A stretch of 64,000 nucleotides of DNA from Octopus sinensis (lineage: Eukaryota). Both the position numbers and the translations under genes were made by a program. This document shows positions 1 through 49,984 of this stretch, one piece after another (the stretch's first letter is position 1; every line of letters begins with the position of its first letter). The notes under the pieces were generated by a model. The model was given only the letters and a program-made list of their open reading frames with translations. It ran no database searches and was not told where the DNA came from. Where the stretch lies: the NCBI RefSeq assembly GCF_006345805.1, contig NW_021832385.1, positions 2,444-66,443 on the forward strand, read 5' to 3'.

Positions 1-640
1 CCGAAGCATTAATCAGAGGGAGATTAATTATAATTTCAACAATTGAGGGCAAAATTAATTAATTATTAATCAATTTCACCAAGTGTTCAGTATGCAAAGG
101 GACCATTCAAGGCGAATTCAAATTATTACATTATATAAAAGGGCTTAGTAAAATAAATTACTTTGCCGCATACTGAACTCATTAGAAATAGCAGCTAAAA
201 AACTTTTTTAAAGCTATTTCTAATACTTAAAGAAAATCTCTCTCATATATAGTGTTTGCTTAATTCAACTCACAAAAGTTTGGGGGTAAGGACATCGAAA
301 AATCAAATGCTAAGGTTATTGAGAACGTACGTTTCAAGATTAGTCAAAAACAACACTTCTATCATCAGCTCAGAAATTCCTTGGTTTGGATTTGGAAACA
401 CTGAAAATAAGAACATACCCTTCGAAGATCTGCTCGTAACTAACAGTGTCAACAAATTCAAATAAGCAAGCGAAGAATCTCTGTTCTCCCCTTTCCACCA
501 GCGTGGGTTAAAATCATCAAACACTATGCTTATTTCGGTAAAATCCGAAGCATTAATCAGAGGGAGATTAATTATAATTTCAACAATTGAGGGCAAAATT
601 AATTAATTATTAATCAATTTCACCAAGTGTTCAGTATGCA
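1..640 (-). repeat. HHR-bearing ~544 bp tandem repeat (family F544), left arm, ~1.2 units
   Basis: ccgaagcattaatcagaggg at 1 recurs at 545; HHR motif on the minus strand; inverted relative to 671-1697. Confidence 0.9.
320..372 (-). ncRNA. Type I hammerhead ribozyme (F544)
   Basis: Reverse complement reads tgag CTGATGA [26 nt] GAAA cgtacg TT ctca; palindromic stem III, GUU triplet. Confidence 0.75.
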
Positions 641-913: not shown

Positions 914-964
914 TGAGCTGATGATGAAGTGTTTGTTTTGACTAATCTTGAAACGTACGTCTCA
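914..964 (+). ncRNA. Hammerhead ribozyme (F544), variant copy
   Basis: tgag CTGATGA...GAAAcgtacgtctca; one T fewer at the cleavage site than the other two copies. Confidence 0.6.
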
Positions 965-1458: not shown

Positions 1459-1511
1459 TGAGCTGATGATAGAAGTGTTGTTTTTGACTAATCTTGAAAC
1501 GTACGTTCTCA
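1459..1511 (+). ncRNA. Type I hammerhead ribozyme (F544)
   Basis: tgag CTGATGA tagaagtgttgtttttgactaatctt GAAA cgtacg TT ctca. Confidence 0.8.
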
Positions 1512-1889: not shown

Positions 1890-3985
1890 AAGTACCAAAA
1901 AGCCCTCATTAGACGGACTGATGAGTTCATCAAAAGAATTCGATGGAGATCGTTCTTCTTCGACCATCCTGATGTAGCATCTACCAGTAATGATAAGTAC
2001 GGCTTCAAATCAAATAAGGCCCCTCCTACCAACAGCCTACTTGAACCGTTTGAAGAAGACCTCTTCCTCATGAAAAAAACATCAATTCAGGAGAGTCAAC
2101 CTACCTTTCCAAACGGAACTGAATGAGAAGCTTTCGAAAATGAAAAGCTCCCAGAACCTCCATGTCCCTTCGGACAAGACAAAAAATATTTACGCGGTGA
2201 CTCCGGATACCTACAACAGACTAGCCGATAACGCCATCACAGCTAAGTACAAGAAAGTAGACGACGCAGCGCTAACTGAAACCAATTTAGCCGGGAAAGA
2301 GATTTCCACCTCCCTTAAAATCGATGACCGAACCGAACCCCTGAGGGTGAAGTCCCCACACTTCACCCTGAAAGACCACAAAGACCATTTCGAAAATAAA
2401 CCGTCGGTCCGTTTGATTAACCCAACCAAGTCTGACATCGGATCCGTCAGCAAGAAGATCCTGGACAGGATTTTACCAAAAATGCGTGAAGCTTCACCCC
2501 TTCCACTCTGGAATAGGACCTCCGAGGCAATAACCTGGTTCGGGATTTACCTGATAAAAGCAACACCCGATTCCTACAACTGGATATCGAGGATTACTAC
2601 GCCTCCATATCGGAGAGCTTGCTGATCGACGCGATTAACTTCGCCAGGAGGTCTTCACCGAGGCCGAGCAAGATGTGATCCTCCACGCACGTAAGACTTT
2701 TCTTTTCTATGACGGATCCCACTGGATCAACAAAAAATCTGTGACCCCTTCGACGTCAGCATGGGTGCTAACGACTCTGCTGAAATAAGTGACTAGTGGG
2801 CCTTTTCATCCTCCATAGGCTGAAAACCTATTCACAGGCCTCTCCGGTAGTCTTTACCGCGATGACGGCCTTTTCGCCCTCCACAAATAAACCCCAGGAC
2901 CACGGATGGGTTCCGGAAAAATCTTTACACCTTCTTAAAAACTTAGGCCTTAGGATTACCTTAGAATCCAACTTAACTAAAGCTAACTTCCTTGATGTCA
3001 CCCTCGACTTAAAAACCTCACTTATTACCCGTACCACAAACCGAATGAATCCCTTAAATATATAGATATTAATCCAACCACCCCCAAAATATATTAGATA
3101 ACCTAGTAAAAAGTGTCTCAATTAGAATTTCTAGCCTGTCCGCCACGGAAGATATCTTTAAGGCCGCAGCCCCCTATTACAACGAGGCCCTGGCCCGCAG
3201 GCTTCAAAGATAAGATTACCTATACTAGTATAGCCCCACGCCAACCCAGGAAAAATAGACGAAGACACATTAGCTGGTACAACCGTGAGGTCGCTACACT
3301 GTAGAAAAATCTTCTTCACTCTCCTACAGAAACACTTCCCCACCCAACATAAGTACTACACTATCCTAAATAAGAACACTATTAGACTCTCCTACTCTAC
3401 CACGCCCAATCTAGCCAGGAACCTAGCCAACAACAATGTGAAAAACTTAACATATCTACTTTTTCCGAGCCCCATCCAACGTCCGATAGCAATTGCAACT
3501 GCCCTGATAAAACCACCTGCCCCCTCAACAACAACTGCCTACAGAGGGACCTAGTATATACATGCGAGGTAAGATCAGGCCCTGACGATAAAAGAAAATC
3601 CTACATCGAATGACGTCAAACAGCTTTAAGACCCGTTGGTACGCACACACACACTCGTTCCGGCGACAGGAAAATCCAACCAAACTACCCTCGCCGGCAC
3701 ATCTGGTACCTTAAAAGGAACTCCATCCCCTTCAAGACCAAGTGGAAACTACTACAGAAGGCGCGCTCGTACACAGGAGGCCATACTGCTGTGACCTCTG
3801 CATATCGGAGAGCCTAGAGATCTTGTTCGCCAAAGGCCCTCTCTTAACAAAATCTCAGAACACTCCCAAATTGTATGCATAAGAAGTATGCGAACTACAA
3901 GAACTATAGACCTACCCGGCAACCAGATTGATGACACCCCCCCCAAATCCCACCGTTCCCCTAGCACCCCCGATTACCTTTTCTC
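1890..3985 (+). mobile_element. Naiad-type PLE 1: RT + GIY-YIG, frameshifted, slightly 5'-truncated
   Basis: Fragments FIKRIRWRSFF, SDKTKNIY, TLKDHKDHF..RLINPTKSDIG, FDVSMGANDSAE, LYRDDG, CNCPDKTTCPLNNNCL, LVY..SYI, CDLC. Confidence 0.9.
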
Positions 3986-4787
<802 letters not shown>

Positions 4788-4796
4788 TATAGAAGG

Positions 4797-4846
4797 AGCT
4801 TCTACAGGACTAGAACTGTTTCATTCAAGAGAATCTTCAGGAAGCT
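4797..4846 (-). ncRNA. Type I hammerhead ribozyme (F200)
   Basis: Reverse complement of the 5133-5183 motif, with one T fewer in stem II. Confidence 0.65.
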
Positions 4847-5132
4847 AGTTAACAAGAATTGTATTGGCATTTATACATTTAGGCAGGTTTAACGGGGTGT
4901 TGGTGGGGGACTTTTTTGGGGTAGGCATAGCGCAAAATATCATACTTGGGGGAGTGGTCAAGGAGTCAGTGTTAAATTAGATAGACGTCAAACTAATATC
5001 TAATTTAACACTGACTCCTTGACCACTCCCCCAAGTATGATATTTTGCGCTATGCCTACCCCCAAAAAGTCCCCCACAACACCCCGTTAAACCTGCCTAA
5101 ATGTATAAATGCCAATACAATTCTTGTTAACT

Positions 5133-5183
5133 AGCTTCCTGAAGATTTCTCTTGAATGAAACAGTTCTAGTCCTGTAGAAGCT
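5133..5183 (+). ncRNA. Type I hammerhead ribozyme (F200)
   Basis: agcttc CTGAAGA tttctcttgaat GAAA cag ttctagtc ctg TA gaagct; 6-bp stem I, GUA triplet. Confidence 0.8.
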
Positions 5184-5264
5184 CCTTCTATATAATAAAT
5201 TAATTTTACTCTGCTATGTATTGAGTACCTTATTTACTGTGCTTAACCCCGAATCAACCCGGGA

Positions 5265-5650
5265 CCTACATATATATATATATATGCATATATGTATGTG
5301 TGTGTATATGTGTATTATGTATGTGTATGTTTATATATATGTATGTATATGTATATGTATGTGTGTGTGTATATGTATATATGTGTATATATATGAGTGT
5401 ACGCGAGTATGTCGATGTATATGTAGGTATGTAGAGTTATGTATGTGCAGGTATGTGAGTGTAGATACAAATTGTAGATGTGTATATATATGTATGTGTA
5501 TATATACATGTATATAGGTATATGTATGTGTGTGTATATATATATATATATATATGTATATGCGAGTATGTAGAGATATAAGTATGTGCATGTGTATATG
5601 TATATGTGTGTATATATATGTATGGGTATGTGTATGTGTATGTATGTATG

Positions 5651-5685
<35 letters not shown>

Positions 5686-5842
5686 GTATGCATATACGTA
5701 TGTATGTATGTATGTATGTATATGTGTATGTATATATGTGTGTAAGTGTGTGTATATATGTAAATGTAAGTGTGTGTGCTTGTATGAGAATGTATGTATG
5801 TTTGCACACATGTATATATGTGTGTGTATGTGTATATGTATA

Positions 5843-5889
<47 letters not shown>

Positions 5890-6165
5890 ATGTGTATGTA
5901 TATATATATGTGTATGTGTGTGTGTATACATGTGTGTATGTGTATGTATGTATGTATATATATGCGTGTGTATGTGTATGTGTATATGTACATATACGCG
6001 TACGCTCGTGTGTTTATGTATATGTAGGTACGTAGAGTTATCTATGTGTGTATTTATATGTACATGTGTGTAAGTATGTATATATATGTATATATGTATG
6101 TGTATGTGTGTGTATATATATATGTATGTATATGTGTATGTGTATGTGATGTGTATGTGTAATAG

Positions 6166-6211
<46 letters not shown>

Positions 6212-6453
6212 ATATATATATGTGTGTAAGTTTAACGTATGTATCCGTCTATATATAGGTAACTGCACGTACATATATTAATATTTATTATTTATTTTTT
6301 GAGTATGCATGTAAGTATGAATATAAGGAGGCGCGTGTGTGGGTGTGTGTATGCGTACGCATGTACATGTGTATGTGCGTGTAGTGTATATATATGTATA
6401 TGTGGGTGTATGCGTATGTGTGTATAATATGTATATATATGTGTATATATATG

Positions 6454-6499
<46 letters not shown>

Positions 6500-6903
6500 A
6501 TGTATGTAGGTGTATATGTATGTGTGTGTATTTATATTTATTGGTGTATATATATAGACTAGCCTTCTAAGAGTGTAGACATGAATTGTAGGTACGCGTA
6601 CGTATGTGTATATACGTGAATGTATGTAGATGTATGTATGTATGAATATAACGCGTGCGTGCGTGTATGTGTATGAGTGTACGAATGAGTGAGTGTACGT
6701 GCTAAAGAGTGTGCGTGAGTGAATGAGTGCTTGTTTTCCAGAGAAGAGATAAATGGACTGGCTGTCATAGCCAGATGTTTGTGACCAAGCGGCCAAGATA
6801 TAACAAAAGTAATAAACGAAGATAATAAAATTAAAATTAGGGAATGGGTCTGTATTTGTATGTGTATATATATGTGTGTATGTGTAGGTATGCATAGGTA
6901 CAC

Positions 6904-6943
<40 letters not shown>

Positions 6944-7305
6944 ATATGTATGTATGTGTGTGTATATGTGTGTGTAGTGTATATATGTGTATATAGGGAC
7001 TAGTGTGCTGTGTGTGCATGTGTGTGTGTGGATATGTGGTGTGTATGCGTGTATGTGAGTATGTGTGTGTAGTGTATATATATTTTTCTGTGCGTATATG
7101 TATGTGTGGTCGTGTGTGTATATATACATGTGTGTATACGTGTATGCATGTGAGTGTGTGTATGTATACATATATGTGTATGTGTAGATATGTATATGTA
7201 TGTGTATGTGTAAGTGTATATTATGTATATATATGTGGTGTATGTATGTGTGTATGATATGTATATATGTTTGTATGTGTGTGTATGTATGTATACATGT
7301 GTGCA
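5265..7305. repeat. Long compound (TA)/(TG)/(TATG) microsatellite
   Basis: Visible low-complexity sequence. Confidence 0.95.
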
Positions 7306-7414: not shown

Positions 7415-7613
7415 CTATCTAATTTAACACTGACTCCTTGACCACTCCCCCAAGTATGATATTTTGCGCTATGCCTACCCCCAAAAAGTCCCCCACCAAC
7501 ACCCCTTTAAACCTGCCTAAATGTATAAATGCCAATACAATTCTTGTTAACTAGCTTCCTGAAGATTTCTCTTGAATGAAACAGTTCTAGTCCTGTAGAA
7601 GCTCCTTCTATAT
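7415..7613 (+). repeat. Third F200 copy
   Basis: Near-identical to 4997-5193. Confidence 0.92.
7553..7603 (+). ncRNA. Type I hammerhead ribozyme (F200)
   Basis: Same motif as 5133-5183. Confidence 0.8.
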
Positions 7614-7703
7614 AATAAATATATATATATATAAATAAATAAATATATATATATATACATATATATGATATATATATATATATATCATATATATATATAT
7701 ATG

Positions 7704-17200: not shown

Positions 17201-18172
17201 GGCAATACAGAACCCTGAGGACACTAAGCACCTGCAATGTGAGCTGGACGAATAATACAAGTGGGCTGAAAAGAATAGCATGCAGTTCAATGCTGAAAAG
17301 TTTCAAGCTTTATACTATCAGCATGCAAAACTGATGCAATACCCAATGAATACACTGGACCCGAGGTTGCAATCCCAGAGGCACAATCAGTGCGTGACCT
17401 GGGTATTCACATGAGTGATGACGCGACCTTTCATGTACATGTTGCTAACTGACAATGAAATGTAGACGCTGCCTGGATGGATTCTTAGAACCTTTAGAAC
17501 AAGAGAACAAGAAACCATGATGGTCCTCTGGAAGACACTTGTCCTAAGCCACTTTGACTATTGCTCTCAGATATGGTCACCATCCAGTGTCAAGTTGATC
17601 ACAGAACTTGAGGCGATCCAACGAAGCTACACGAAGAAGATAGCCTCTATGCAGAATGTAAGCTACTGGAAAAGACTCAAGAGATTAAAATTATATTCCC
17701 TGGAGCGTAGGCGGGAAAGATATGCCATAATATACATCTGGAAGATCCTGGAGGGAAGTGTCCTGAACTTTGGCATCGAGAGTTACGCAAATGCCAGAAC
17801 TGGGCGCCACTGCGTGGTGCCTAGGACTCCAAACCTGCCATCAAGATGTAGGACAAGATTCTGTGATAGCCTGGGCTTCCGAGGCCCACAGCTCTTCAAT
17901 ATCCTCCCGAAGAACCTGAGAGACCTGCATGGGGTGGATACAGATGTCTTTAAAATGAAGCTAGATCTCTTCCTGTCAGGTGTCCCAGATGAACCAACTT
18001 CACGGCAGGAGGGGCAGATGAGGGCAGCTACATCGAACTCTCTCATGCATCAAATAGCAGTTGCTAGAAAGCCCCCATGAAGTGAAACCAAGTAGCAACA
18101 CCAAATGGCGGTGCCCCAGCATGGCCACAGCTCATAAGCTGAAACTAGAATCAATCAATCAATCAATCAATC
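14265..18172 (+). mobile_element. Full-length LINE copy A (Myb/SANT-like, CCCH, APE, RT), frameshifted
   Basis: MSRAWRPDELDLFVQAW start; LTETHLKPD; RSHGGVAMY; QHGFRPGRSC; YLDFAKAFDKVDHG; YSLERRRERY; 3' UTR ggcggtgccccagcatggcc; (AATC)n tail. Confidence 0.93.
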
Positions 18173-18293
18173 ATATATATATATGATATTTTATATATAT
18201 ATGTTATATATATATGATATATATATATATATATATATTATAGATATATGATATTTATATATATATGATATATATATATATGATATATATATA

Positions 18294-18328
<35 letters not shown>

Positions 18329-18329
18329 A

Positions 18330-18360
<31 letters not shown>

Positions 18361-18565
18361 ATATATATATGATTATATATATATTTTATCTATATATTAT
18401 AAATGAATATATATATCTATATATATATATATATAGATATATATATATATATATGATATATATTATATGATTATATATATATAGGATATATATAATATAT
18501 ATATATATGATATATTATTATATATATATAGATATATGATATATATATATATAATGTATATATTG

Positions 18566-18597
<32 letters not shown>

Positions 18598-18667
18598 ATA
18601 TGTATAATATATATATATGATATATATATATATATATAATATATATATATGATATTTATATATATAG

Positions 18668-18707
<40 letters not shown>

Positions 18708-18888
18708 GATATATATATATATGATATATATATATATATATAATATATATACACATATGAATATATATATATAATATATATATATGTTATATATATATAT
18801 TATATATGATATATATATATATAATATATATATAATATATGATATTATATGATATATATATATATGATATATATATATGCTGATATAT

Positions 18889-18920
<32 letters not shown>

Positions 18921-19372
18921 ATATGATATATATATATGTATACATATATGATATATATATATATATATCAATATATGATATAATATATATATATGATATA
19001 TATATATATATATGATATATATATGTATATGATATATATATATATGATATATATATATATAATGATATATATAATGATATATATATATATATATGATTAA
19101 TATATTGATATATATATATATATGATATATAATATATATGAATATATATATTATATGAATATATATATATGATATATATTATATATATATATATGATTAT
19201 ATATATATATATATATATGATATCTATATATATGTATATAATATATGATATATAATATATATGATATATATATATATATATGATATATATATATGTATAT
19301 GATATATATTTATATATGATATATATATATATATGATATATATACATATATATTTATATTATATATATATAA

Positions 19373-19426
<54 letters not shown>

Positions 19427-19573
19427 ATATATATATGAAGATATATATATATAGATATATAATGATATATATATATATGATAATATTTATATATATATAT
19501 GATATATATATATATATGATATATATATATATATATATGATATATATATATGATATATTATATATATTATATG

Positions 19574-19604
<31 letters not shown>

Positions 19605-19847
19605 TATATTATATCATATGTATAACATATATATATGATATTATATATATAGATATATCATATATATATTTATATGATATATATATATGATATTATATAT
19701 ATATATATATATATATATGATATATATATATATATATGATATATATATATGATTATATATATATATGATATATATATATATATACATATATATATGATAT
19801 ATATATTTATATGATATATTTATATATATAATATATATATTTATATG

Positions 19848-19878
<31 letters not shown>

Positions 19879-19970
19879 ATATATATGATATAGTATATAT
19901 GATATATATATATGATATATATATATGTATATGATGTATATTTATATATGATATTATATGTAATGATATA

Positions 19971-20010
<40 letters not shown>
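18173..20010. repeat. ~1.8 kb (TA)n microsatellite with interspersed TGA
   Basis: Visible run. Confidence 0.95.
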
Positions 20011-20015
<5 letters not shown>

Positions 20016-21893
20016 GTTTAACACACTCATATATACTATATTAATATTTATTTACTTTTTTGAAAGAGTGTATTTTATAAATATGTGTATGGGATGATAT
20101 GTGTGAATGTATATTTTATATATATTTTATATATATATATATTTTTATGTTTGTATATGTATTTATTTAATCATTTATTGAGAGTCGGATTGAATATATT
20201 TGTGTATATATCGAGTTTTGTACGTATGTATATGTATGTGTGAGTGTGTATATGGTTATGTTTGTGGGTGTGTGTACATATGTGTGTGTATTTGTGTGTA
20301 TTGTGGATTTGGTAAGGTGGTTTATCTTTATATTTGTATGTATGGATTTCATTTATCATGATTTTTTATTACGAATTTTTTAGTATTTTGTTGTTCTTGG
20401 TAGTTTTTTTATTGGGTATTGTTTTGTAGCCATTGATACGTATATTTAGATGTCTAGGAGAGTGTCCGTGAATATGCATATTATGGGTGTGTGTGCATGT
20501 GTGCGCGTGTATAAGTGCATGTGTAGATGTGGGAGTGCATGATTGCTATGTAAAAGTGTGTGCTTGTGTATGCACTTGTATACATGCATGATTGATGTGC
20601 GTGAGATTGCACCCATTTTTTTAGGGATATTTATATTTATTTATTTGTATGGGTGTGGGAGTGAATATCTTGATGTATATATCGAGGTTTGTACGTATGT
20701 ATATGTATGTGTGAGTGGAGTGGGTATATGTATATGTAGTGGGTGTGTGTTTTACGTGTGTGTATTTGTGTGAGAATGTATAGATAGGGGGATTGCTATA
20801 TAGGTATGTTATAGTGTTTAGTAAAGGGAGATTTTATCGTTATATGTATATATGAGTTTTCGTTTATCAAGGTAGTTTTATTAAAGAATTTGTAGTAATT
20901 TCTGTCTGTTTAAGTGTTTAACATATTATTCCATTTATTCCATTCATAATTTTAAATAACGTTCGTTCTCCACGCGCAAAGAATTTTATAATTCCATTCT
21001 GTTCCATTCATAATTTTAAATGACGTTCGTTCACCGAGCTAAGAATTTTTATAAATATGTTCGGTTTCTATGGTAACGTAATTTTGTTTAAAGTTATAAC
21101 GGCTAGAGTTTGAATTCACTTCATAAATTAAAACAGATTAGGAGGTATGTATTTTTTTCTCCTTATGTTAATCTTGTTACTTATATGTTAATCTGGTTAC
21201 TTATGGAGTATTTTATATATCGTATTATGTGTAGATATGTTGTTTTTCTTTTGAGTGTTTATGTAGGTGTGAATGTGTCTGTGTGTGCGTATTTGGTTGT
21301 GTAATTTATTTATCTATATGGGTGTGGGTGTGAATATATTGTTGTATATATCGAGTTTAGTACGTATGTATATGTATATGTGAGGGGGTATATGTATATG
21401 TTATGGGTGTGTCTTTTACGTGTGTGTATTTTTGTGTGTGAATGTATTATGGGGATTGCTATATAGGTATTATTGTGTATGGTAAAGGGTGTTTTATCAT
21501 TATATGTATATATGGGTTTCATTATCATGATTGGTTTATTAATGATTTTGGAGTAAATTCTGTATATTTACGTTGATTAAGTATTATTCCATCCATTTTT
21601 CATTCATGATTTTAAAAAAACGTTCGATCCCACGCGCAAAGAATTGTTTATTTTTCTTTTGAGTGTTTATGTATGTGTGAGTGTGTGTGTGTGTGTGTGA
21701 TTGTTTGCGTAATTTATTTATCTGTATGGGTGTGGGTGTGAATATATTGGTGTATATATCGAGTTCTGTATGTATGTATATGTATGTGTGAGCGGGTATA
21801 TGTATATGTTTATGACTGTGGGTTTGTATGTGTGTGAGGGAGTATGAATAAGTAATGTGTTGAAGTATTGGCTATTTTTTAATTTATTCATTT
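20011..21893. repeat. Degenerate AT/TG-rich internally repeated region, possibly the 3' UTR of an upstream PLE copy
   Basis: tcgag(t/g)tt.gta.gtatgtatatgtat block at ~20211, 20682, 21351, 21759; acgttcg block at ~20958, 21021, 21619. Confidence 0.55.
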
Positions 21894-22387
21894 ATCGTTG
21901 CATAGACGTTTTTATGTGTATGTATAGATATATATATATATTGGTGTGTGAGTTAGTGTATGTATTTAGATATGGTTATATATATTTAGTTATATGTGTA
22001 TGAGCATGTGTGTATATATAGTTTATTTATTTATTTTTTTATTTAAAAAATTTTTTTTTTGTACATCTTTAAATATGAGAACTTTAATAATAAGTTTCTT
22101 TATATTCAATTGTTTATAGGGTTTATTTTAGATTATATATTGATTATATATAGATTATATATAGATTATATATATTTATATTTTTCATTGATAATTTTAT
22201 TATTTTAAACTTATATTTTAATATATTGATATTTTAGATCGAAAATCCACCTGACGAATGTCATTGAAGACATGAAACGATTGTAGTGGCGGTTTATTTC
22301 TTTATATTAAAAATTTTTATGTATTGATTAAGTCTTTCCTTGTTTGTTTTGCAAAGTAGTGGTTTTGTCTCGAATTAATATTATATA
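21894..22387 (+). repeat. Pseudo-LTR / direct repeat 1 of PLE 2
   Basis: atcgttgcatagacg...tcgaattaatattatata, near-identical to 24034-24527. Confidence 0.92.
22247..22289 (+). ncRNA. Minimal type I hammerhead ribozyme
   Basis: ccac CTGACGA atgtc attgaa gacat GAAA c gatt g TA gtgg. Confidence 0.88.
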
Positions 22388-22523
22388 ATATTTTACTATA
22401 AAATTGGATTTAATCCTAAATATGATTTTTCCCTGTAAATTTGGATTTATTCCCTAATATTTATTATTATTTAATATATTGATAATTTTGTATATTGAGT
22501 GTAATACCTCAATTTCGTAAATT

Positions 22524-24089
22524 ATGGAATTTACAGGTAAGATAGAACCGCTATTTTGGGATTCATCTTTGAAAGATATTCCTATACCTTCTAGAAAGGA
22601 ATTTATTTTGAAATTTATTAATAATGTTAAAGGTTTTATTTCTAGAATTAAATGGAAAGCTTATTACTATGATTTTTATTTATTTAATGATAATGATAGT
22701 AGGAATGATAATTTTACCTCTAAATTTAAATCTAGAAAGGAGCCTCCACTTAATAAAGATTTACAATTACTAGAAGATAATATATGGAAGGTAGTAAAAA
22801 ATATTGAATTCTATAAATACCCAAATAGAAATAATGAATATTTGAGAAACTTAGCAATTAAAATTAAAGATATGAGAAATATGGATGGTATTATAGTACA
22901 ATCTGATAAAACTAGGAATCTATATAAATTAGATGTTAAATTATATGATAAACTCTTAGGGAAAGAAATAATTAAAAAATATAAAATTGTTCCAGATTAT
23001 ATACTTTATAATATTAATAAGGCCTCTAAATTAGTAATGTTAAAATATGAATTGGATAATAAAACTGAACCTTATGTACCTTTGCACCTTAGAATTACTC
23101 TTAAAGACCATAAAGATAATTTTTATTCAGACCCTAAAGTTAGATTAATTTGCCCATGTAAATCTGACCTAGGTAAATTAAGTAAATTTATTTTAGATAA
23201 ATATATCAATAAATTAAATAAACTTAATTATTTAAAATTATGGTTTAGTAATAACAATACATTGAAATGGTTTAATAATATTAAAGATAAAAATCGTTAT
23301 AAATTTATTCAAATAGATATAGATAATTATTATTCTTCTATTAATGAAATTGTGTTTAATAAAGCACTTATTTTCGCAATGAATAAAGTGGGAATGTCAA
23401 TTGAAGAAGTTAATGTAATTAAAATGGCTAGGAAATCGCTCATTAAATATAAAAATAAATTATGGTCTAGGAATGATACTAGAGATTGTTTTGATATACC
23501 GATGGGAGCACCAGATTCTGCACAAGCTACTGATTTAGTAGGTATTTTTCTTTTATCTGAACTCCAATTAGAAAATCTTAAGATAGAGGGTGGCTTATAT
23601 AGAGATGATCTTCTACTAATTACAAAGAATTGTACTAATAGGAATCTAGAAGTATATAAGAAGAAACTATATAGTTTCTTTAAAAGATATGGTTTAAGTA
23701 TTACTATATATAAGGAGAATTATAATGTTAATTATTTAGATGTTAATTTTAATCTAATTACAGGTAAAACACAACCATATCATAAAATTAATGTGAACCT
23801 TAGATATATAAATGTTAATAGTAATCACCCACATTCTATAAAAAAATCGTTGATTAATAATATAAGTAAACGTATTTCATTACTCTCTTATGATATAGAG
23901 ATTTTTAATAAACATGCTACTTATTATAATGAGGCCCTTAGAGGGGCAGGTTATAATAGGAATATTAAATTTTATAATATTAAGGATACAGATTTAACTA
24001 ATAATTTTCAAGATAATTATAATAATATATATAATCGTTGCATAGACGTTTTTATGTGTATGTATAGAGATATATATATTGGTGTGTGA
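22524..24089 (+). CDS. Penelope-like (Naiad clade) reverse transcriptase, 521 aa, uninterrupted, no GIY-YIG
   Basis: SSLKDIPIPS N-terminus, SDKTRNLY, LKDHKDNF..RLICPCKSDLG, IQIDIDNYYSSI, PMGAPDSAQATDLVG, LYRDD, YLDVNFNL, SNHPHSIKK thumb. Confidence 0.92.
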   Translation: MEFTGKIEPLFWDSSLKDIPIPSRKEFILKFINNVKGFISRIKWKAYYYDFYLFNDNDSRNDNFTSKFKSRKEPPLNKDLQLLEDNIWKVVKNIEFYKYPNRNNEYLRNLAIKIKDMRNMDGIIVQSDKTRNLYKLDVKLYDKLLGKEIIKKYKIVPDYILYNINKASKLVMLKYELDNKTEPYVPLHLRITLKDHKDNFYSDPKVRLICPCKSDLGKLSKFILDKYINKLNKLNYLKLWFSNNNTLKWFNNIKDKNRYKFIQIDIDNYYSSINEIVFNKALIFAMNKVGMSIEEVNVIKMARKSLIKYKNKLWSRNDTRDCFDIPMGAPDSAQATDLVGIFLLSELQLENLKIEGGLYRDDLLLITKNCTNRNLEVYKKKLYSFFKRYGLSITIYKENYNVNYLDVNFNLITGKTQPYHKINVNLRYINVNSNHPHSIKKSLINNISKRISLLSYDIEIFNKHATYYNEALRGAGYNRNIKFYNIKDTDLTNNFQDNYNNIYNRCIDVFMCMYRDIYIGV

Positions 24090-24527
24090 GTTAGTGTATG
24101 TATTTAGATATGGTTATATATATTTAGTTATATGTGTATGAGCATGTGTGTATATATAGTTTATTTTTATTTTTATTTTTTTTTTTTGTACATCTTTAAA
24201 TATGAGAATTTTAATAATAGGTTTCTTTATATTCAATTGTTTATAGGGTTTATTTTAGATTATATATTGATTATATATAGATTATATATAGATTATATAT
24301 AGATTATATATATTTATATTTTTCATTGATAATTTTATATTTTAACTTATATTTTAATATATTGATATTTTAGATCGAAAATCCACCTGACGAATGTCAT
24401 TGAAGACATGAAACGATTGTGTGTGGCGGTTTATTTCTTTATATTAAAAATTTTTATGTATTGATTAAGTCTTTCCTTTCCTGTTTGTTTTGCAAAGTAG
24501 TGGTTTTGTCTCGAATTAATATTATAT
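24034..24527 (+). repeat. Pseudo-LTR / direct repeat 2 of PLE 2
   Basis: Copy of 21894-22387; overlaps the last ~18 codons of the ORF. Confidence 0.92.
24383..24426 (+). ncRNA. Hammerhead ribozyme copy with altered cleavage site (GUG plus an extra T)
   Basis: GAAAcgattgtgtgtgg here versus GAAAcgattgtagtgg in repeat 1. Confidence 0.6.
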
Positions 24528-24532
24528 ATATG

Positions 24533-24584
<52 letters not shown>

Positions 24585-24697
24585 ATATATATATATATAT
24601 GATATATATATATATACATATATATACATATATGATATATATATATTATATATATATATGATATATATATATATGATATTATATAATATATACATAT

Positions 24698-24748
<51 letters not shown>

Positions 24749-24751
24749 TGA

Positions 24752-24846
<95 letters not shown>

Positions 24847-24849
<3 letters not shown>

Positions 24850-25087
24850 AGTGGGCTGAAAAGAATAGCATGCAGTTCAATACTGAAAAGTTTCAAGCTT
24901 TATACTATCAGCATGCAAAACTAAATGCAATACCCAATGAATACACTGGACCCGGAGGTATTGCAATCCCAGAGGCACAATCAGTGCGTGACCTGGGTAT
25001 TCACATGAGTGATGACGCGACATTTCATATACATGTTGCCATACTGGCAATGAAATGTAGACGGCTGGCTGGATGGATTCTTAGAAA
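24847..25087 (+). mobile_element. Internal RT C-terminal fragment of the Myb-LINE family (B0)
   Basis: Closely matches ~28066-28307 of the downstream copy. Confidence 0.88.
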
Positions 25088-28000
25088 TCCATCCAGGCGT
25101 TGTTTGTACGAGCCTGGAAATGCGCCGACGGAGATAGCCCTAACAATGTGATTACGGCTGCGCTGAAGAGCGGCAGCTACAAAAGGACAATAGCTCAGAT
25201 AGAGCGAAAGAAACAGGAATTCATACGCTCCTATGCGCTTGTACGGTCGCACATTGGCACACTTGATGCCATTTTTGAGAACGAGCAGGGCAAAGATGGC
25301 AAGGATGGAGACGATGAAAGAAGTCACCCCCACCTGGTGGACACCCGGGAAGGGGTTTTGAACGAGAAACCTGCCCGGGAAGTGAACCCGAGTACAAGTG
25401 CTCCTACCGACAGCAAGGGCCATGGAGATGGAGAACCCAGGGAAGAAGTAGAGGGAGGAAGAACAAAAAGAAGGACTGAAAGAGATAAAGGAAAAGCTCA
25501 AGCAGGACCAAAGGGTGAAACAGCCAGGAATAGAAGCGGAACCGCAAGGGATGGAAACAAACAGCGCACACGGGTGTGTAGGTTCTACCTGAGAGGTACC
25601 TGCTGGCATGGAGAGGAAGGTGCAGGCTGCCGCTTTGCACATCGGGGACTCTGCCGCAGAGACACGAAACGAAAACAGATAAACAAACCATCAACACAAG
25701 GAAAAGGGATGGACCACGCACCACCTGCCCCAAAACGGAGGTACGCAGATGTGGTGCGTGCCACGAACCGCCAACATGATGTTGTTGAAAGGGCAGCTGC
25801 TGAGCAAGAATCCTTTTTGTGCATGGCACAAAAGATTGTACAGCAGCTGACCTGGCTTCATCAAACCCAAGCTCGCACAATATACAAGACCACCACAGCA
25901 AACAGACCCAAGATGGACACCGCCGGCAACAACATCCACCTCACCTCGATGCTCCTACTGAACATCAGAGGACTGCAAACACTCAGTAACAGGACAAAAA
26001 ACCGGTTCTTGAGAGACTTTGTCGCATGCAATCAAGCCTTATGCATAGCACTCACGGAAACGCACCTGAAACCGGACATAGCAGATGCGGAATTACACAT
26101 CCACAGTATGTTGTACTACGGACCGACAGAAAAGAAAGGAGTCATGGAGGAGTTGCTATGTACATCCGTGAGGACCTCACACCCCAGGTCCTTTTGTCAT
26201 ACTCAAACTCGGTGTGTGACACACTAATTGTACACATAAGGCAACTTGATGTAGTTGTGTGTGCTACATATCGCACTCCAGATGCCCCAAGCCATGTGGG
26301 CAAGTTTGAAGACTGCCTTATAAAAATAGAAGTTCTAATCACATTAGAACAACACATAAGTGTACTTCTCATGGGAGACTTCAATCAACACAATGTCAGA
26401 TGGCCTGAGGGCCTTTCTCTCCCAGGAATGACAAGATGTGAACGAGGACAGGCGAGGTCCCTCCTGAACCTCATCAACACCCTTTACATGGAGCAAGTAA
26501 TACTCCAACCAACAAGGGCAGGTAACACACTGGATCTCTGCTTCACAAATAATATGGATCTCATCCATAATGTGAAAGTGACACCGACACTACTCTCGGA
26601 TCACAACATGGTAGAGCTGACCATGTACGGGCCAAAGAGAGCATGCATGCAGCCTACAAGAAACCCTCAGAATCTTTCCAGCTTGAACTACCATGAGGCA
26701 CCTGGAAACAAATTGAGAAAGAGATCCTCAAACAAAACTGGCCTAAATGTCTCTCCTCGCCAGACATCGACGTGAAACTTCAACAATTCATGTCTGTAAC
26801 GCAAGCCATATGCTACAAATGTGTCCCAGAGAGAAAGGCCACTGTACACAAGAACAAAATCCCCAGAGAGAGGAAAATTTTAATGAGACGGCGTACAAAA
26901 ATTTCAAATCACCTAAACAAACAGATTGAAAGCAGTGAAAAGTCCCGCCTGAAAATTAAACTGTTGGAAATTGAAAAATGTCTGCAACTCTCCCATGAAA
27001 AGGAAAGAGCAGACAAAGAAGCCTGGGCTATAGAAAAATCTAACCCCAGAGCTTTCTACAAGTATGCCAAAGAAACAGCTACAGTGCACTGTAAGATAGG
27101 GCCACTCCTTGAAAAGGATGGCACACTTACAGGAAAACCAATGAGGGTAAGTGAAATACTGAATGAGCAATTCAAGAGTGTTTTCACTCCACACCTCGGG
27201 CATTTCCAAATCACAAATCCAACTGACTTTTTTACCACTGCAGATATAAAATCAGAGGCGGCGACGATAAATTACATCGATATAAAGGAAGACGATGTAA
27301 TAAAGGCTATAGATGAAATGAAAACAGACTCAGCTACTGGCCCCGATGGATTCCCGGCAATCCTCCTAAAAGTATGTAAGAGAGTCCTAGCAAGACCACT
27401 GCAGTTCCTCTTTCAGAGCTTCCTTGCAGCTGGCAAACTTCCAAGAAAACTGAAGGAAGGTAAAATATGACCCATTCATAAAGGAGGCAGCAGAGCGGAG
27501 GCCAAGAACTACAGACCTATCTCTCTGACCGCACACATCAGCAAGGTCATGGAACGAATAGTCAGAAGGAAACTGATCCCCTTCCTTGAAGAAAATGGCT
27601 TGCTGCCCGACACCCAACATGGTTTCCGACCGGGGAGAAGCTGTTTAACTCAGCTCCTACAACACTATGACTGGGTGCTGAAACAACTGCTCAACCACTC
27701 AAATGTGGAAGTGATATATCTCGACTTTGAAAAGGCCTTTGATAAAGTCGATCATGGAATGATATGTCACAAACTGCGTGATCTTGGCATAGTTGGAAAA
27801 TTGGGAGAATGGCTTCATGACTTTCTGAAGAATAGAAGTCAGGTGGTAGCAGCCAATGGGGCCACTTCCATTAACACGCAAATAGTGAGCGGTGTTCCGC
27901 AGGGCACTGTTTTGGGACCACTACAGTTCATAATGGCCCTCTCAGACATGCCCTCAGCCACGCAGAGAGCCACGATCACAAGTTATGCAGATGATACAAA

Positions 28001-28990
28001 AGTTTCACAGGCAATACAGAACCCTGAGGACACTAAGCACCTGCAATGTGAGCTGGACGAAATATACAAGTGGGCTGAAAAGAATAGCATGCAGTTCAAT
28101 GCTGAAAAGTTTCAAGCTTTATACTATCAGCATGCAAAACTAAATGCAATACCCAATGAATACACTGGTCCCAGAGGGATTGCAATCCCAGAGGCACAAT
28201 CAGTGCGTGACCTGGGTATTCACATGAGTGACGACGCAACCTTTCACGTACATGTTGCTAAACTGGCAATGAAATGTAGACGGCTGGCTGGATGGATTCT
28301 TAGAAACTTTAGAACAAGAGAACAAGAAACCATGATGTTCCTCCTGAAGACACTTGTCCTAAGCCACTTTGACTATTGCTCTCAGCTATGATCACCATCC
28401 AGTGTCAAGTTCATCACAGAACTTGAGGCGATCCAACGAAGCTACACGAAGAAGATAGCCTCTGTGCAGCATATGAGCTACTGGGAAAGACTCAAGAGAT
28501 TAAAGCTCTATTCCCTGGAGCGTAGGCGAGAAAGATATGCCATAATATATATCTGGAAGATCCTGAAAGGACTTGTCCCAGACTTTGGCATCGAGAGTCA
28601 CACAAATGCCAGAACAGGACGTCACTGCGTAGAACCAAGGACTCCAAATTTGCCATCAAGACGTAGGACAAGATATTGTGATAGCCTGGGCTTCAGAGGC
28701 CCACAGCTCTTCAATATCCTCCCGAAGAACCTGAGGGACCTGCATGGTGTAGATGCGGATGTCTTTAAAGTAGGACTAGATCTCTTCCTGTCAGGTGTCC
28801 CGGATGAACCAACTTCACGGCAGGAGGTGCAGATGAGGGCAGCTGCATCGAACTCTCTCATGCATCAGATGGCGTTTGCTAAAAAGCATCCGTGAGGTAA
28901 AATCGTGTAGCAAACCAAATGGCGGTGCCCCAGCATGGCCACAGCTCATTAGCTGAAACTGGAAAATCAAAATCAATCAAAATCAAAATC
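25088..28990 (+). mobile_element. Near full-length LINE copy B (Myb/SANT-like, CCCH, APE, RT)
   Basis: ORF 25100-26227 joins the Myb-like region, CRFYLRGTCWHGEEGAGCRFAH and LLLNIRGL..LTETHL; RT in 27549-28391 with YADD; (AAATC)n-like tail. Confidence 0.93.
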
Positions 28991-37105: not shown

Positions 37106-37419
37106 TATATACATAAATATATATATATATAACTACCCTGAAACATGTCTGCAGATGTCTGACCCACAAGTGAAGCGGCTGACCTCCCCTGTTCGAAGGT
37201 TGTAATGGACGCAGGTTCGTGTGTCATATAGCTAGCTAGAGGCGATGGCCTCTTGGAGCTAATCAGCGACAGCTTTAATCTTATCTTTATGGACTGCCAT
37301 ATTAGTTTGGCGATAACTATTAATATATAAATATATATATACATATATGTATATATACATATATATATATGTAAATATATACATATATATATAATATCCT
37401 TAAATAATTCCAAGACTGA

Positions 37420-38250
37420 ACACTATCCCCCCCCCAGTTGTAATTGTAGGATTAGATCAAATTGTCCGGTATCTGGTCGTTGTTCGGTCCAAAATGTAAT
37501 TTATAAATGCACGATAACTTCTAACAATAGCTTTCTTTATTTCGGATGTTCAGTAGATTTTAAAAAACGTCTCAACAATCATTTTTCCTCTTTGAGACTA
37601 AAACATAAGGCAGGTCGCACTACACTATCTAGCAAAATTTGGGAACTAAAAACAAATAATATATGATTCAACCTAAAATGGGATATAGTTAGAAGGGCGA
37701 AACCTTATAGAAATAGTAGGGAAGGTTGTCAACTTTGTTCTATGGAAACTTATGAAATTTTAAAGCATCGAAGTAATAAAATCTGTTGAATAATCGTCTG
37801 GAGTTGGGAGCATCTTGCATACATTCCACAACTCGAACGTTTAAATACTTTAAATAAAAATTTCAACTTTTATTATAATAATATTAAGAAATATACTATA
37901 CTAGCCTTCAACTTAACTTTCATAGATGACTAGAATAACTTCACTGTAATCTTGAAATTGGAACTCTTCCTAAATCTAATCTAGTTTAAAATTTAAAGCT
38001 GTAGTTTTGGTCAGTTAGCGACTGAACTTCACAACCTCATATGTTCTTAAAATTTAAATCTACATCTTTATCTGTATATCTACCTTCTCTAAAATGTTAC
38101 TACTTGATTTGAAAGCTTTTATATTATTGGAAAACCTATATAATTGGCTGAAGAGCATTCAGCATCTTAAATCTGCTGTAATTCTTACAACTTTTAATAA
38201 AATGTTGTAGTACGAAACAATTGTACCAAATTACCGGAGTCATTCTTGTT
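37420..38250 (+). mobile_element. Naiad-type PLE 3' end: GIY-YIG remnant plus pLTR
   Basis: CNCRIRSNCPVSGRC..VIYKC..YFG..TTLSSKIWELK..CQLC..CIH at ~37430-37830. Confidence 0.85.
38144..38229 (+). ncRNA. Hammerhead ribozyme with branched 59-nt stem II
   Basis: ttgg CTGAAGA [59 nt] GAAA caattg TA ccaa. Confidence 0.75.
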
Positions 38251-45235: not shown

Positions 45236-45393
45236 TTATGTATATACTTATATATATGTATATTTAGGTGTATATACACTTATATGTATATGTAAATATG
45301 TACATATGCATATTTTTGTATATGTGTACCTTGTTTAATATTCATATTTGCATTTTATATCTTCATTTTATATCTTTATAATTGTACTTTATA

Positions 45394-45519
45394 ATTTCTG
45401 ACGAGGCCTTGAGATATATATATAAGTAACTCATTTTTAATTGCATATTACCTCAATACATCTGACTAATATGGGCATAATGAGATACTCTTATCTACAG
45501 GCTGAAATAGCTGTAAGAT
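45394..45519 (+). ncRNA. Hammerhead ribozyme with 99-nt stem II
   Basis: attt CTGACGA ggcct...aggct GAAA tagctg TA agat. Confidence 0.7.
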
Positions 45520-45998
45520 CCATTTTATATGTATTATTCTTATGTTATTATCTTACTTATTGATGTATATTGTTATATTGTTTTATTCTGTCTTATTCTG
45601 CTGGATTTGTATGTTCCTATTTAATCTAAAAAATTAGTTAATAAATTATATGAATTGGTATTATCTGGAAATTGAGGACTGAAAGAAATCTATTCCTCCA
45701 TTTTCTTACTTTGTATAATGAATTTGAGGTAAAACATTTTACCTTCCCCATATAATACAATAAATCAATTAATTGCATTGCAATTCTTAGCATTTATGTA
45801 TTAGCCTTCTGGGTACTTTACTGGCAGTATATTGGATAAATGATATCCCATAGTGGGTTACACTCATAACCCCTATCTCACTTTGTACTTTTAAGTTATT
45901 TTTCTGAGGAATTTGAATTGCTAATACTTATGTACATGAAGTATCTACTCAGATGGTATAAGTGAATGCATCCAAGTATAGTACATCAATTCCACAGG

Positions 45999-48789: not shown

Positions 48790-49984
48790 CACTTAGTTTT
48801 AAATCAGTAATTTTAAATGACCTAAATAGCTGTTATAGACTTATTACTGTTTTATCTAGGAATACTAATTCTGCCATTAATCATGGGCATTCTAATTTTA
48901 TATTTCTATGTATAAGTGTTTTGTTTTATTTTGTTTTTGAATATATCTGTATATTTTGATATATATATATATATTTTTATCCACATCGAATTTTCTACTG
49001 GTCTCGCACATATACGTACACCATATCATATGCATTTAGTTTGGGACTTCGGTGTATTGATCTGTACTTAGTTTGGGTCTATATATTAAACACATGGTGT
49101 TCACCTTTAGATGCGTACATGTGTATACATACATATGTAAGTGTGTACGTATATCTAAATTTCATGTAGGTCTTTGTATGAATCCACTTGGTGGTCTTCA
49201 ATATTAAGTTTTTTTTATGTATATTTGTACTTATTTGTACTTTTTTGTTTTTGTACTTTTTTTATTTACTGACACTCGATAATTTATAATTTATAATTTA
49301 TTATAACATATATATGTATATGTGTACATTTGTGTATGTGTATGCCTGAGTGTATGTGTATGTGCATGTGTAGGCGTGCATGTATATCTGTATTTATGAT
49401 TGTGCATGTAAGTATGTCTGCGTATGTTTGTATGTATGTGGATATATAGGTATGTCTATTCTAGTAGGGTGTATGTATGTATTTGAATGTATGTATAAAT
49501 GTATATATGTATAGGTGTGTGTGTATGCATAAATATATTTTTATATATATGTATGTAGCTATGTATATGTTTATATATATGTATGTATATATATGTTACT
49601 TATATGTATGTATATTTATGTGTGGGTATATAAGCACATATGTATGTGTGTATGTATGAACGTTCTTGTCTGTGTATACATGCTTATTTGTTTGTATATT
49701 GTATATGTATAGTATGCATATATGGGGATGTTTGTAGGTCTGTATGCACGCGTGCATGAGGATCTTTATATACATATATGAGTGTATATATGTATGTGCA
49801 TATATATATTTACTTATGTTCCTCTACCTATATTGGATTCAGACTTTTGTTGCATTTTACAGGTTTATTGGTATTGGGTGGACTGTATATTTATTTGTTT
49901 AGTTTTAACTAAGTAAGTACCTTGTTTAATATTCATATTTGCATTTTATATCTTCATTTTATATCTTTATAATTGTACTTTATA

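Follow-up and report, generated by a model that had tools for sequence, protein, structure and literature searches.

The locus described here is read, at a probability of about 0.7, as a Hydra-clade Penelope-like element (PLE) inserted as a partial tandem of 1.23 units into a (TA)n microsatellite of what is probably an octopod cephalopod genome, the element being an endonuclease-deletion derivative of an endonuclease-bearing (EN+) one. This one copy is an EN-deletion variant of a retroelement kind already known, and no new element type. A sequence-only reading of the window (the whole 64,000-nucleotide stretch of DNA that was analysed) had proposed a Naiad reverse transcriptase (RT) without endonuclease (EN), bracketed by hammerhead repeats and possibly forming an autonomous retrozyme. 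Our analysis upheld an intact RT ORF without linker or EN between hammerhead repeats, corrected the Naiad family and gave no support to the retrozyme interpretation.

Organization of the locus

The following features were delineated (positions are those of the window).

21894..22387, + strand: upstream pseudo-LTR (pLTR), remnant (final 494 nt) of a tandem element copy truncated on its 5' side, 93% identical to 24034-24528
22247..22289, + strand: hammerhead 1, type I, helix I CCAC/GUGG, core CUGACGA...GAAA, fitting the full type-I descriptor scan
22388-24528, + strand: full-length unit, 2141 bp, starting where the upstream repeat stops (22387)
22388..22523, + strand: 5' untranslated region of the full-length unit, from the repeat end at 22387 to the ATG at 22524
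22524..24089, + strand: RT ORF, 521 aa, with N-terminal region (KWK, DKT), RT fingers/palm (IDIDNYY, MGAPDS, YRDD) and thumb
23973..24086, + strand: non-homologous C-terminal tail, aa 484-521, replacing the ~240-aa linker/CxCx5C/GIY-YIG module of relatives
24034..24528, + strand: downstream pLTR, 3'-terminal part of the full-length unit with ORF tail and 3' UTR, terminus ...AATATTATATA
24383..24426, + strand: hammerhead 2, core and helices as in hammerhead 1, cleavage triplet GUG with an extra U (G at position 17)
24529..24846, no strand: (TA)n-rich microsatellite directly following the element's 3' end, presumably the target of insertion

An alignment of 510 columns gives 93% identity between the two repeats, which differ by about 7 substitutions and about 7 indels. 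The downstream repeat begins 56 nt ahead of the ORF stop codon, so that the ORF runs into a direct repeat of ~494 bp as previously noticed, and the first 56 nt of the upstream repeat match the ORF tail and stop codon. Such a partial-tandem pLTR layout has been described for PLEs, and Hydra-clade elements target (TA)n for insertion (PMC8557442). Consistent with this, the unit terminates in TATATA and adjoins (TA)n, which is also found at the 3' ends of Argonauta relatives. The region is 78% A+T. A scan for bacterial-type promoters and terminators, irrelevant for such DNA, stayed below shuffle expectation.

An intact ORF for a telomerase-like RT

The RT ORF corresponds to the longest stop-free stretch of the window (522 codons, followed by stretches of 380 and of 350 codons, the latter low-complexity junk). 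With an in-frame TAA immediately 5' of its ATG, a complete N-terminus, RT motifs and thumb, the 521-codon frame is intact as originally claimed. The N-terminus, ME...SLK(D/N)IPIP, is conserved and common to relatives, and in an alignment of these the motifs FIQIDIDNYYSSI, MGAPDSAQ and GLYRDD occupy columns conserved family-wide, IDIDNYY and MGAPDS lying about 60 aa apart in the target. Across aa 1-483, 86 of the 98 columns conserved in the family are kept by the target; among its 12 changes, 4 are conservative.

Pfam returned almost nothing for the ORF and 66 family members (RVT_1 and GIY-YIG in 2 of 66 each, both weak), and a family profile searched against PDB sequences returned no RT. The RT call was therefore made from structure prediction and Foldseek. 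The AlphaFold2 model of the 521-aa ORF reached a pLDDT of 90.0 and a pTM of 0.87, with residues 494-521 below 50. Its best Foldseek matches were telomerase RTs (E 2.5e-10 to 1e-8), followed by DRT2, LINE-1 ORF2p, retron and group II intron RTs. A telomerase RT as best structural match to the model is expected for the Penelope-like class, and the ORF is predicted to encode a structurally complete, telomerase-like RT.

A rough neutrality estimate, scaled to slippage-prone tracts, gave 3-5 expected indels in the ORF against 0 seen (P about 0.01-0.04). An indel-free ORF beside indel-bearing pLTRs is a hint, and no more, of constraint or of recent activity, since the pLTRs were not necessarily identical at insertion.

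Probable membership of the Hydra clade

Judged by its sequence features, the element is assigned to the Hydra clade of PLEs and not to Naiad. This assignment was made because of the KWK/RWK motif, DKT, the hammerhead, the (TA)n, a unit below 3 kb and the C-terminal CxCx5C and GIY-YIG of its relatives. The target's RIKWKAY stands in the same column as R(M/I)RWKA of relatives, the R-to-K exchange being conservative, and the DKG-to-DKT change is represented by SDKTRNLY at aa 127-134, whose D, K and T do not vary across the alignment. The pLTR contains a canonical hammerhead (hammerhead 1, fitting the type-I descriptor, below the Rfam threshold), and the 2141-bp unit sits at (TA)n (24529-24846). 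Naiads, on the other hand, have an N-terminal GIY-YIG with a CxC motif, DKA and no canonical hammerheads (Craig et al. 2021, PMC8557442). The present ORF opens at the RT N-terminal region, the EN of its relatives is C-terminal, and DKT is combined with a canonical hammerhead. DKT, KWK, hammerhead and (TA)n end together match the description of the Hydra clade; the Naiad assignment was wrong.

In an NJ tree whose database sequences were all relatives sharing the Hydra motifs, the sister of the target was the EN+ copy C (46020-48786, same window; 96% bootstrap). Copy C is the nearest full-length EN+ relative, on a long branch and at about 50% aa identity, a distance at which synonymous sites are saturated. 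Because this closest relative bears EN, the loss of EN is derived. The best database protein relative has 43% identity to the target ORF. An Octopus bimaculoides protein aligns at 62% identity over 106 aa, a 74-aa stretch being visibly more similar, and from this match the family appears to be present in that species and hence to be no private sequence.

All nearest database relatives examined have linker or EN in the protein or, in one case (Argonauta P0006), downstream of a premature stop. P0006 (482 aa) had been considered as an RT-only relative and was rejected, since its locus holds linker and EN beyond that stop. Some other short relatives stop within the linker motif or immediately behind it.

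Loss of the linker and endonuclease module

The missing module measures roughly 0.7 kb and in all examined relatives consists of linker (IIWFNPPFS), CxCx5C knuckle and GIY-YIG EN. Searching 23900-24600 by tblastn with six full-length relatives gave no linker, Cys knuckle or EN match, and a 43-sequence linker and EN profile (--max, E<=10) gave none either, in agreement with the absence reported earlier. Elsewhere in the window the same searches detected the modules at 3306-3907, 37409-37851 and 47896-48783. The thumb motif is followed by 235-251 residues in relatives versus 44 in the target, and homology of all relatives to the target ends at aa 483; the alignment thus places the loss site within or just 3' of the tail at 23973..24086. 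The C-terminal CxCx5C and GIY-YIG are present in copy C, P0001, P0002 and most other relatives. Their absence from the target identifies it as a derivative, and an atypical member, of the Hydra clade.

The loss is clean, in that one functional module is gone while the thumb and the 3' UTR are spared; a propagating variant would look alike. The spacer that follows the thumb is AT-rich and Asn-coding, and together with a 3' UTR that is also AT-rich it may have favoured deletion, or a template switch of the RT, at the module boundary. An EN-less copy would have no DNA nicking of its own; to move, it would need EN provided in trans or a 3' end already present in (TA)n on which to prime. The one copy is compatible both with a deletion that preceded insertion, as in a transposing variant, and with one that took place later at the locus. 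Deletion from a known element is the most likely reading, and the internal deletion that had been named as the simpler alternative remains the leading explanation.

Hammerhead motifs in the pseudo-LTRs

Cores of the form CTGACGA-ATGTCATTGAAGACAT-GAAA occur at 22251-22277 and 24387-24413. They are 2136 nt apart and enclose the ORF, as the sequence-only reading had it. A loose hammerhead core pattern matched 12 times in the whole window (1.85 expected). Helix II of hammerhead 1 has 5 bp (AUGUC/GACAU) and a 6-nt loop, helix III (ACGAUUGU) is self-complementary with G-U pairs, and cleavage is predicted at GUA|G, 22285/22286 (after A22285). RNAcofold predicted a dimer with an 8-bp intermolecular helix III at -22.4 versus 2 x -8.9 kcal/mol, and minimum-free-energy folding of the monomer hammerheads gave z about 0. 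Rfam detected no hammerhead at the gathering score in the whole window or at E<=10 on 3.5 kb. On an isolated 86-nt stretch the sole match was Hammerhead_1 (RF00163), in the register of hammerhead 1, at 10.8 bits against a gathering score of 34 (E 6.8); PLE hammerheads are described in the literature as minimal variants.

Hammerhead 2 fits the type-I descriptor only in a poor alternative register. Hammerheads do not tolerate G17. With this base at its cleavage position, hammerhead 2 is predicted to be impaired and is probably crippled. One of the two hammerheads being mutated at the cleavage site, precise excision of a 2.1-kb monomer from the genomic copy is unlikely.

Hammerheads in pLTRs belong to the general architecture of PLEs (literature), and we also saw them in the pLTRs of an Argonauta hians relative and of copy C, as well as upstream of the ORF in an ENA contig. 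The flanking 494-bp hammerhead repeats are ordinary pLTRs produced by partial tandem insertion, not a special mark of a retrozyme. This general architecture and the G17 of hammerhead 2 speak against an autonomous retrozyme. The further suggestion that the RT serves the ORF-less hammerhead arrays of the window found no footing, as those arrays are two unrelated hammerhead families and nothing links them to the target RT.

A propagating EN-less lineage and other explanations

We consider it unlikely that the copy represents a propagating EN-less Hydra lineage, which is what the proposed autonomous retrozyme would amount to. In such a lineage transcription would start in the pLTR, and the RNA of the RT-only unit would be cut by the hammerheads to a monomer of ~2.14 kb, perhaps circularised, and translated. 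Insertion would proceed by reverse transcription at (TA)n 3' ends pairing with the UAUAUA terminus, or with EN from EN+ relatives in trans, and more than one round of reverse transcription on a circle would yield the 1.23-unit tandem. An intact ORF with conserved residues despite indel-rich pLTRs counts in its favour, as do the clean removal of one module, the TATATA end beside (TA)n and a canonical hammerhead 1 predicted to dimerise. EN-less families within EN+ clades have precedent, and a descent of animal retrozymes from PLE pLTRs has been proposed (literature). The long branch to copy C would suit an EN-less lineage that is old. Against propagation stands the single known copy: exact look-up of the target ORF retrieved no record, no second copy was found among database proteins, where the best relative is the 43% one, and protein-pattern scans of the JGI metagenomes and IMG/VR had no match. 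The exact hammerhead pattern had no match in the JGI metagenomes either. G17 in hammerhead 2 also weighs against propagation, as does the outcome for P0006, the sole RT-only candidate examined at its locus, which is an EN+ element with a premature stop. The other hammerhead arrays of the window are unrelated in sequence to the element.

Quite improbable is the far-reaching form of this idea, a cephalopod Hydra-clade lineage without GIY-YIG that still spreads as a 2.1-kb, hammerhead-delimited, RT-coding RNA and, via UAUAUA, primes on 3' ends laid bare in fragile (TA)n tracts or else borrows EN in trans. Such a lineage would stand, as a coding intermediate, between the autonomous PLEs and the non-coding retrozymes of animals. 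On the evidence of one copy, an isolated deletion looks the same as a lineage that propagates without EN.

It is very unlikely that the element is a recombinant in which the RT-coding 5' part of a Hydra element was template-switched onto the 3' region of a non-coding, retrozyme-like hammerhead element. The first ~130 nt of the pLTR do resemble (70-76%) the GT/TA-rich sequence inside the ORF-less hammerhead repeats at 4100-7300, as well as comparable tracts elsewhere, but the resemblance is one of low-complexity GT/TA sequence. Nothing else in the window matches the hammerhead or the remainder of the pLTR, and outside the core the hammerhead families are different. An assembly artefact, with the EN region deleted by collapse of repeated AT-rich sequence, is hardly credible: PLE tandems are known to trouble assemblies (literature) and the A+T content is high, but the ORF reads through cleanly, the edges of the missing stretch are not mutual repeats in the assembled sequence, and the pLTR pair is diverged rather than collapsed.

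As a mere deletion copy, the locus would be of little importance. With it, a Hydra-clade element that has hammerhead pLTRs is documented from a cephalopod-like genome, and the Naiad misassignment is corrected. Should the EN-less form turn out to exist in many copies, it would illustrate from nature how an autonomous PLE sheds modules towards non-coding hammerhead retrozymes, and would be a test case for EN-independent, microsatellite-primed retrotransposition outside telomeres.

Comparison with known systems

With the Hydra clade (Craig, Yushenova, Rodriguez & Arkhipova 2021, PMC8557442), whose reported hosts include molluscs and which has no insertion-in-fingers domain (IFD) between RT motifs A and B, the element shares a short single-ORF unit, an RWK-type motif and DKT, the pLTR hammerhead, (TA)n and partial-tandem pLTRs. 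It differs in having no linker and EN, and in the first residue of RWK, which is K in the target. EN losses inside EN+ PLE clades are 'not unusual' (PMC8557442), and EN-less derivatives cited there are the Neptune-like MjPLE01 of kuruma shrimp, Chlamys PLE-X and EN-/EN* Naiad families. These are described as families, whereas the target is a single documented copy and falls in the Hydra clade.

Athena and Coprina resemble the element in having an RT without EN and a hammerhead near the 3' end. In contrast to the target, whose nearest relatives are EN+, they are deep separate clades attached to telomeres via reverse-complement telomeric repeats. The 3' end of the target is TA-rich and lies at an internal microsatellite, and TTAGGG-type telomeric repeats are absent from the window.

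Metazoan non-LTR retrozymes (Cervera & de la Pena 2020, PMC7229834; Li et al. 2026 preprint) likewise carry a type-I hammerhead in direct repeats and have low G+C, and an evolutionary link between them and PLE pLTRs is likely. Circular RNA is the form in which such retrozymes are expressed. They are non-coding tandem units of about 170-400 nt, whereas the element described here is a 2.14-kb unit with an RT ORF of 521 aa, present as 1.23 units.

An uninterrupted reverse transcriptase ORF in a partial tandem

The element under study is a Penelope-like element (PLE) copy at 21894-24528, with the following parts.

21894-22387 and 24034-24528, + strand: direct repeats, the pseudo-LTRs (pLTRs), 93% identical over 510 aligned columns
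22388-24528, + strand: full unit of 2141 bp (136-nt 5' UTR, ORF, 439-nt 3' UTR)
22524-24089, + strand: uninterrupted ORF of 521 aa
24529-24846: (TA)n-rich microsatellite adjoining the 3' end (24528) of the downstream repeat

The sequence-only reading had described an uninterrupted 521-codon ORF running into a direct repeat of ~494 bp, and both features were confirmed: the ATG directly follows an in-frame TAA, and the start of the downstream repeat lies 56 nt ahead of the stop codon. This is the longest stop-free stretch of the 64 kb; the runners-up span 380 and 350 codons, the latter translating into HTYIH-type low-complexity junk. The pLTRs differ by ~7 substitutions and ~7 indels, mainly at slippage-prone tracts. 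Read as a PLE, the copy is a partial tandem in which an upstream, 5'-truncated copy provides the 494-bp pLTR. Just past the (TA)n tract, a non-LTR retrotransposon (24847-28388, + strand; apurinic-type endonuclease and RT) lies in several frames, and the best named relatives of its RT are from Octopus (67%) and Argonauta hians (61%), pointing to a probable octopod host.

Pfam found no domain in the ORF, and among 66 relatives it detected RVT_1 in two and GIY-YIG in two, both weakly; a family profile searched against PDB sequences found no RT. With 66 sequences as input, AlphaFold2 gave a confident model (mean pLDDT 90.0, pTM 0.87), with pLDDT below 50 only in residues 494-521. Foldseek against the PDB ranked telomerase RTs first (Candida, Tribolium, yeast and human; E 2.5e-10 to 1e-8), followed by DRT2, LINE-1 ORF2p, retron and group II intron RTs, an order expected from the sister-group relation of PLE RTs to telomerase RTs (PMC8557442). 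Within residues 1-483, the ORF retains 86 of the 98 columns with family conservation of 85% or more. Of the 12 changes, four are conservative, and a nine-sequence alignment shows at least three more (S127, C210, Q334) in the nearest relatives too.

The element matches the Hydra type

The copy had been taken for a Naiad, a clade thought to carry a C-terminal GIY-YIG. According to the published description, the Naiad GIY-YIG is N-terminal, with a CxC motif linking it to the RT, and Naiads show DKA and lack a canonical hammerhead (Craig et al. 2021, PMC8557442). Hydra-clade elements are short (<3 kb) and have one ORF, with RWK, and with DKT in place of DKG; their GIY-YIG lies at the C-terminus, has no CCHH and follows a CxCx5C linker. 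Their hammerheads are canonical, they insert into (TA)n, and molluscs are among their hosts (PMC8557442). Our element has KWK in the RWK column, DKT, a hammerhead, the (TA)n 3' flank and a 2.14-kb unit; its relatives carry ...IIWFNPPFS..., CNCRxKxxCP plus a GIY-YIG that lies C-terminally. Naiad identity was rejected on DKT and the hammerhead, and, matched to these published clade descriptions, the copy is a Hydra-type element. The linker motif IIWFNPPFS of this family (database relatives P0001-P0065) resembles motif IV (NPPF/Y) of N6-adenine DNA methyltransferases, a likeness too short to interpret; Pfam Dam matched three of 66 members weakly, and the EcoKI M protein also aligned weakly.

Three further Hydra-type sequences lie in the window.

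1890-3907, + strand: copy A, degraded; RT pieces in several frames (1890-3200), linker and GIY-YIG (3306-3907)
37409-37851, + strand: solitary GIY-YIG endonuclease fragment (profile score 103 bits), presumably a 5'-truncated copy
45326-50216, + strand: copy C; RT 46020-47548, linker 47896-48120, endonuclease 48361-48786

In a neighbour-joining tree of RT residues 239-429 from the element, copy C and database relatives, the element was sister to copy C with 96% bootstrap, the pair grouping among P0001 and P0002, P0019 and two Argonauta hians proteins. Copy C, P0001 and P0002 are EN+, that is, they possess linker and GIY-YIG endonuclease. Because its sister copy C and the neighbours P0001 and P0002 are EN+, endonuclease loss in the element is placed as derived within an EN+ group. 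Its branch is long (~50% amino-acid identity to copy C). In a chimeric Octopus bimaculoides gene model, a 74-aa stretch is visibly closer to the element than the 62% overall identity of the 106-aa alignment; judged from such sequences, the family is not private to the 21894-24528 locus.

The endonuclease module is absent

The linker motif, Cys knuckle and GIY-YIG had been reported as missing, and our searches bear this out. In relatives whose C-terminus is complete, the stretch after the thumb motif is strikingly constant at 235-251 residues, versus 44 here, and every alignment of relatives to the element stops at residue 483. Neither tblastn with six full-length relatives nor a linker+endonuclease profile of 43 relatives (filters off, E<=10) detected the module in 23900-24600; elsewhere in the window it was located at 3306-3907 (copy A), 37409-37851 (the solitary fragment) and 47896-48783 (copy C). 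By these searches, the module is absent, neither decayed nor frameshifted. The copy is ~0.7 kb short of EN+ relatives; with the module its unit would be ~2.8 kb.

Only the upstream hammerhead has an intact cleavage site

As previously noted, two hammerhead motifs lie 2136 nt apart: CTGACGA-ATGTCATTGAAGACAT-GAAA occurs once per repeat, at 22251 and 24387. A loose core pattern matched 12 times in the window versus 1.85 expected by chance. In a descriptor scan, the upstream motif satisfied the full type-I descriptor, with helix I CCAC/GUGG, a 5-bp helix II, helix III ACGAUUGU (self-complementary with G-U pairs allowed) and the cleavage triplet GUA, predicting a cut between 22285 and 22286. RNAcofold predicted a dimer with an intermolecular helix III of 8 bp at -22.4 kcal/mol, versus 2 x -8.9 for the monomers. 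Vertebrate retrozyme type-I hammerheads with weak helix III have been shown to act as dimers, and PLE hammerheads are described in the literature as minimal variants. Rfam called neither motif at gathering score, nor at E<=10 on 3.5 kb; for an isolated 86-nt stretch the single match was Hammerhead_1 in the descriptor's register, scoring 10.8 bits (gathering 34). The assignment of the motif therefore relies on the descriptor rather than on Rfam.

The downstream motif differs exactly at the cleavage site, where GUA-GUGG becomes GUGUGUGG, with G at position 17, and matches the descriptor solely in a poor alternative register. Hammerheads are not known to tolerate G at position 17. The genomic copy is therefore unlikely, on its sequence, to free a monomer with precise ends.

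The hammerhead-pLTR architecture is, by sequence comparison, not special. PLE hammerheads lie in pLTRs as a rule (literature including PMC8557442). Around P0003, the Argonauta element has a unit of 3217 bp with 255-bp, 100% identical pLTRs. The pLTR contains a hammerhead-like CCUGACGA...GAAACAAUUGU whose palindromic helix III is of the same kind; the 3' flank is (TA)n, and an endonuclease follows the broken ORF. In an ENA contig, a hammerhead lies 190 nt 5' of the ORF. Copy C has 300-bp pLTRs (45326-45625 and 49917-50216; 98% identical), an unusually long unit (4591 bp), (TA)n near its 3' end and, read by eye, a hammerhead-like CUGACGAGGCC...GGCUGAAAUAGCUGUA at ~45397-45510 in the pLTR with a ~95-nt helix II insertion.

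ORF-less hammerhead repeats belong to two other families.

4819-4840 (-), 5139-5161 (+), 7559-7581 (+): second hammerhead family
332-368 (-), 918-953 (+), 1463-1499 (+): third, hammerhead-like family

The second family reads AGCUUC-CUGAAGA-UUUCUCUUGAAU-GAAA-CAGUUCUAGUCCUGU-A|GAAGCU (helix I 6 bp, helix III 4 bp, U-U at the helix II base). Its repeats at 5059-5200 and 7479-7620 are direct, 2420 nt apart and 95% identical, adjoined by an inverted copy (4832-4996), and the interior that they enclose is of low complexity (GT/TA) and lacks any real ORF. The unit is ORF-less and hammerhead-flanked, and in sequence unrelated to the element's hammerhead. The third family, directly upstream of copy A, has the core CUGAUGA...GAAA and a perfectly palindromic helix III, ACGUACGU; its plus-strand copies are 545 nt apart inside nearly perfect inverted repeats (99-100%). 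We found no link between these arrays and the RT proposed to supply them. Upstream of the element lie ~2 kb of TA-rich microsatellite (18000-20010; G+C ~10%) and GT-rich repeats with units recurring at 408-669-nt spacing (20010-21893); similar GT/TA tracts follow copy C and occur within the ORF-less hammerhead unit.

Single deletion or endonuclease-less lineage

That the copy is an autonomous retrozyme is not supported, hammerheads in pLTRs being usual for PLEs and the downstream motif having G at position 17. A propagating EN-less lineage is improbable, with a chance of roughly one in five to one in seven. In its favour, the ORF is free of indels. The pLTR substitution divergence of ~1.2-2% predicts ~9-16 substitutions in the ORF, and the chance of no stop is an uninformative 0.4-0.6; 3-5 ORF indels would be expected and none with P ~0.01-0.04, by a rough slippage-tract scaling of the ~7 pLTR indels that assumes pLTRs identical at insertion. 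The pLTRs of PLEs may differ already at insertion. The absence of indels hints at constraint or recent activity. Copy C has a broken ORF (at least three frameshifts) although its pLTR similarity is about the same. No record of the exact ORF was found; the best-matching protein in a set of 5.8 billion clusters shares 43% identity, and no further copies emerged when JGI metagenomes and IMG/VR were scanned by pattern. Argonauta P0006 (482 aa), the single plausible RT-only relative inspected, was rejected, its linker and endonuclease lying downstream of a premature stop.

Beyond the architecture, the modelled RT fold, the missing endonuclease and the difference between the hammerheads, we infer the following course. 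An EN+ Hydra element would have lost its C-terminal module by deletion or RT template switching, joining the AT-rich spacer after the thumb to the AT-rich 3' region. The resulting copy could supply RT but not nick a target, and to move it would depend on an endonuclease acting in trans or on a 3' end already present. Base pairing between the ...UAUAUA terminus of the unit and whatever (TA)n end is exposed makes priming on such ends conceivable. The 1.23-unit tandem would be the expected product of template jumping or of more than one round of reverse transcription on a circular template.

Loss of the endonuclease inside EN+ PLE clades is on record from earlier work (PMC8557442), so that even a lineage would vary a familiar theme.
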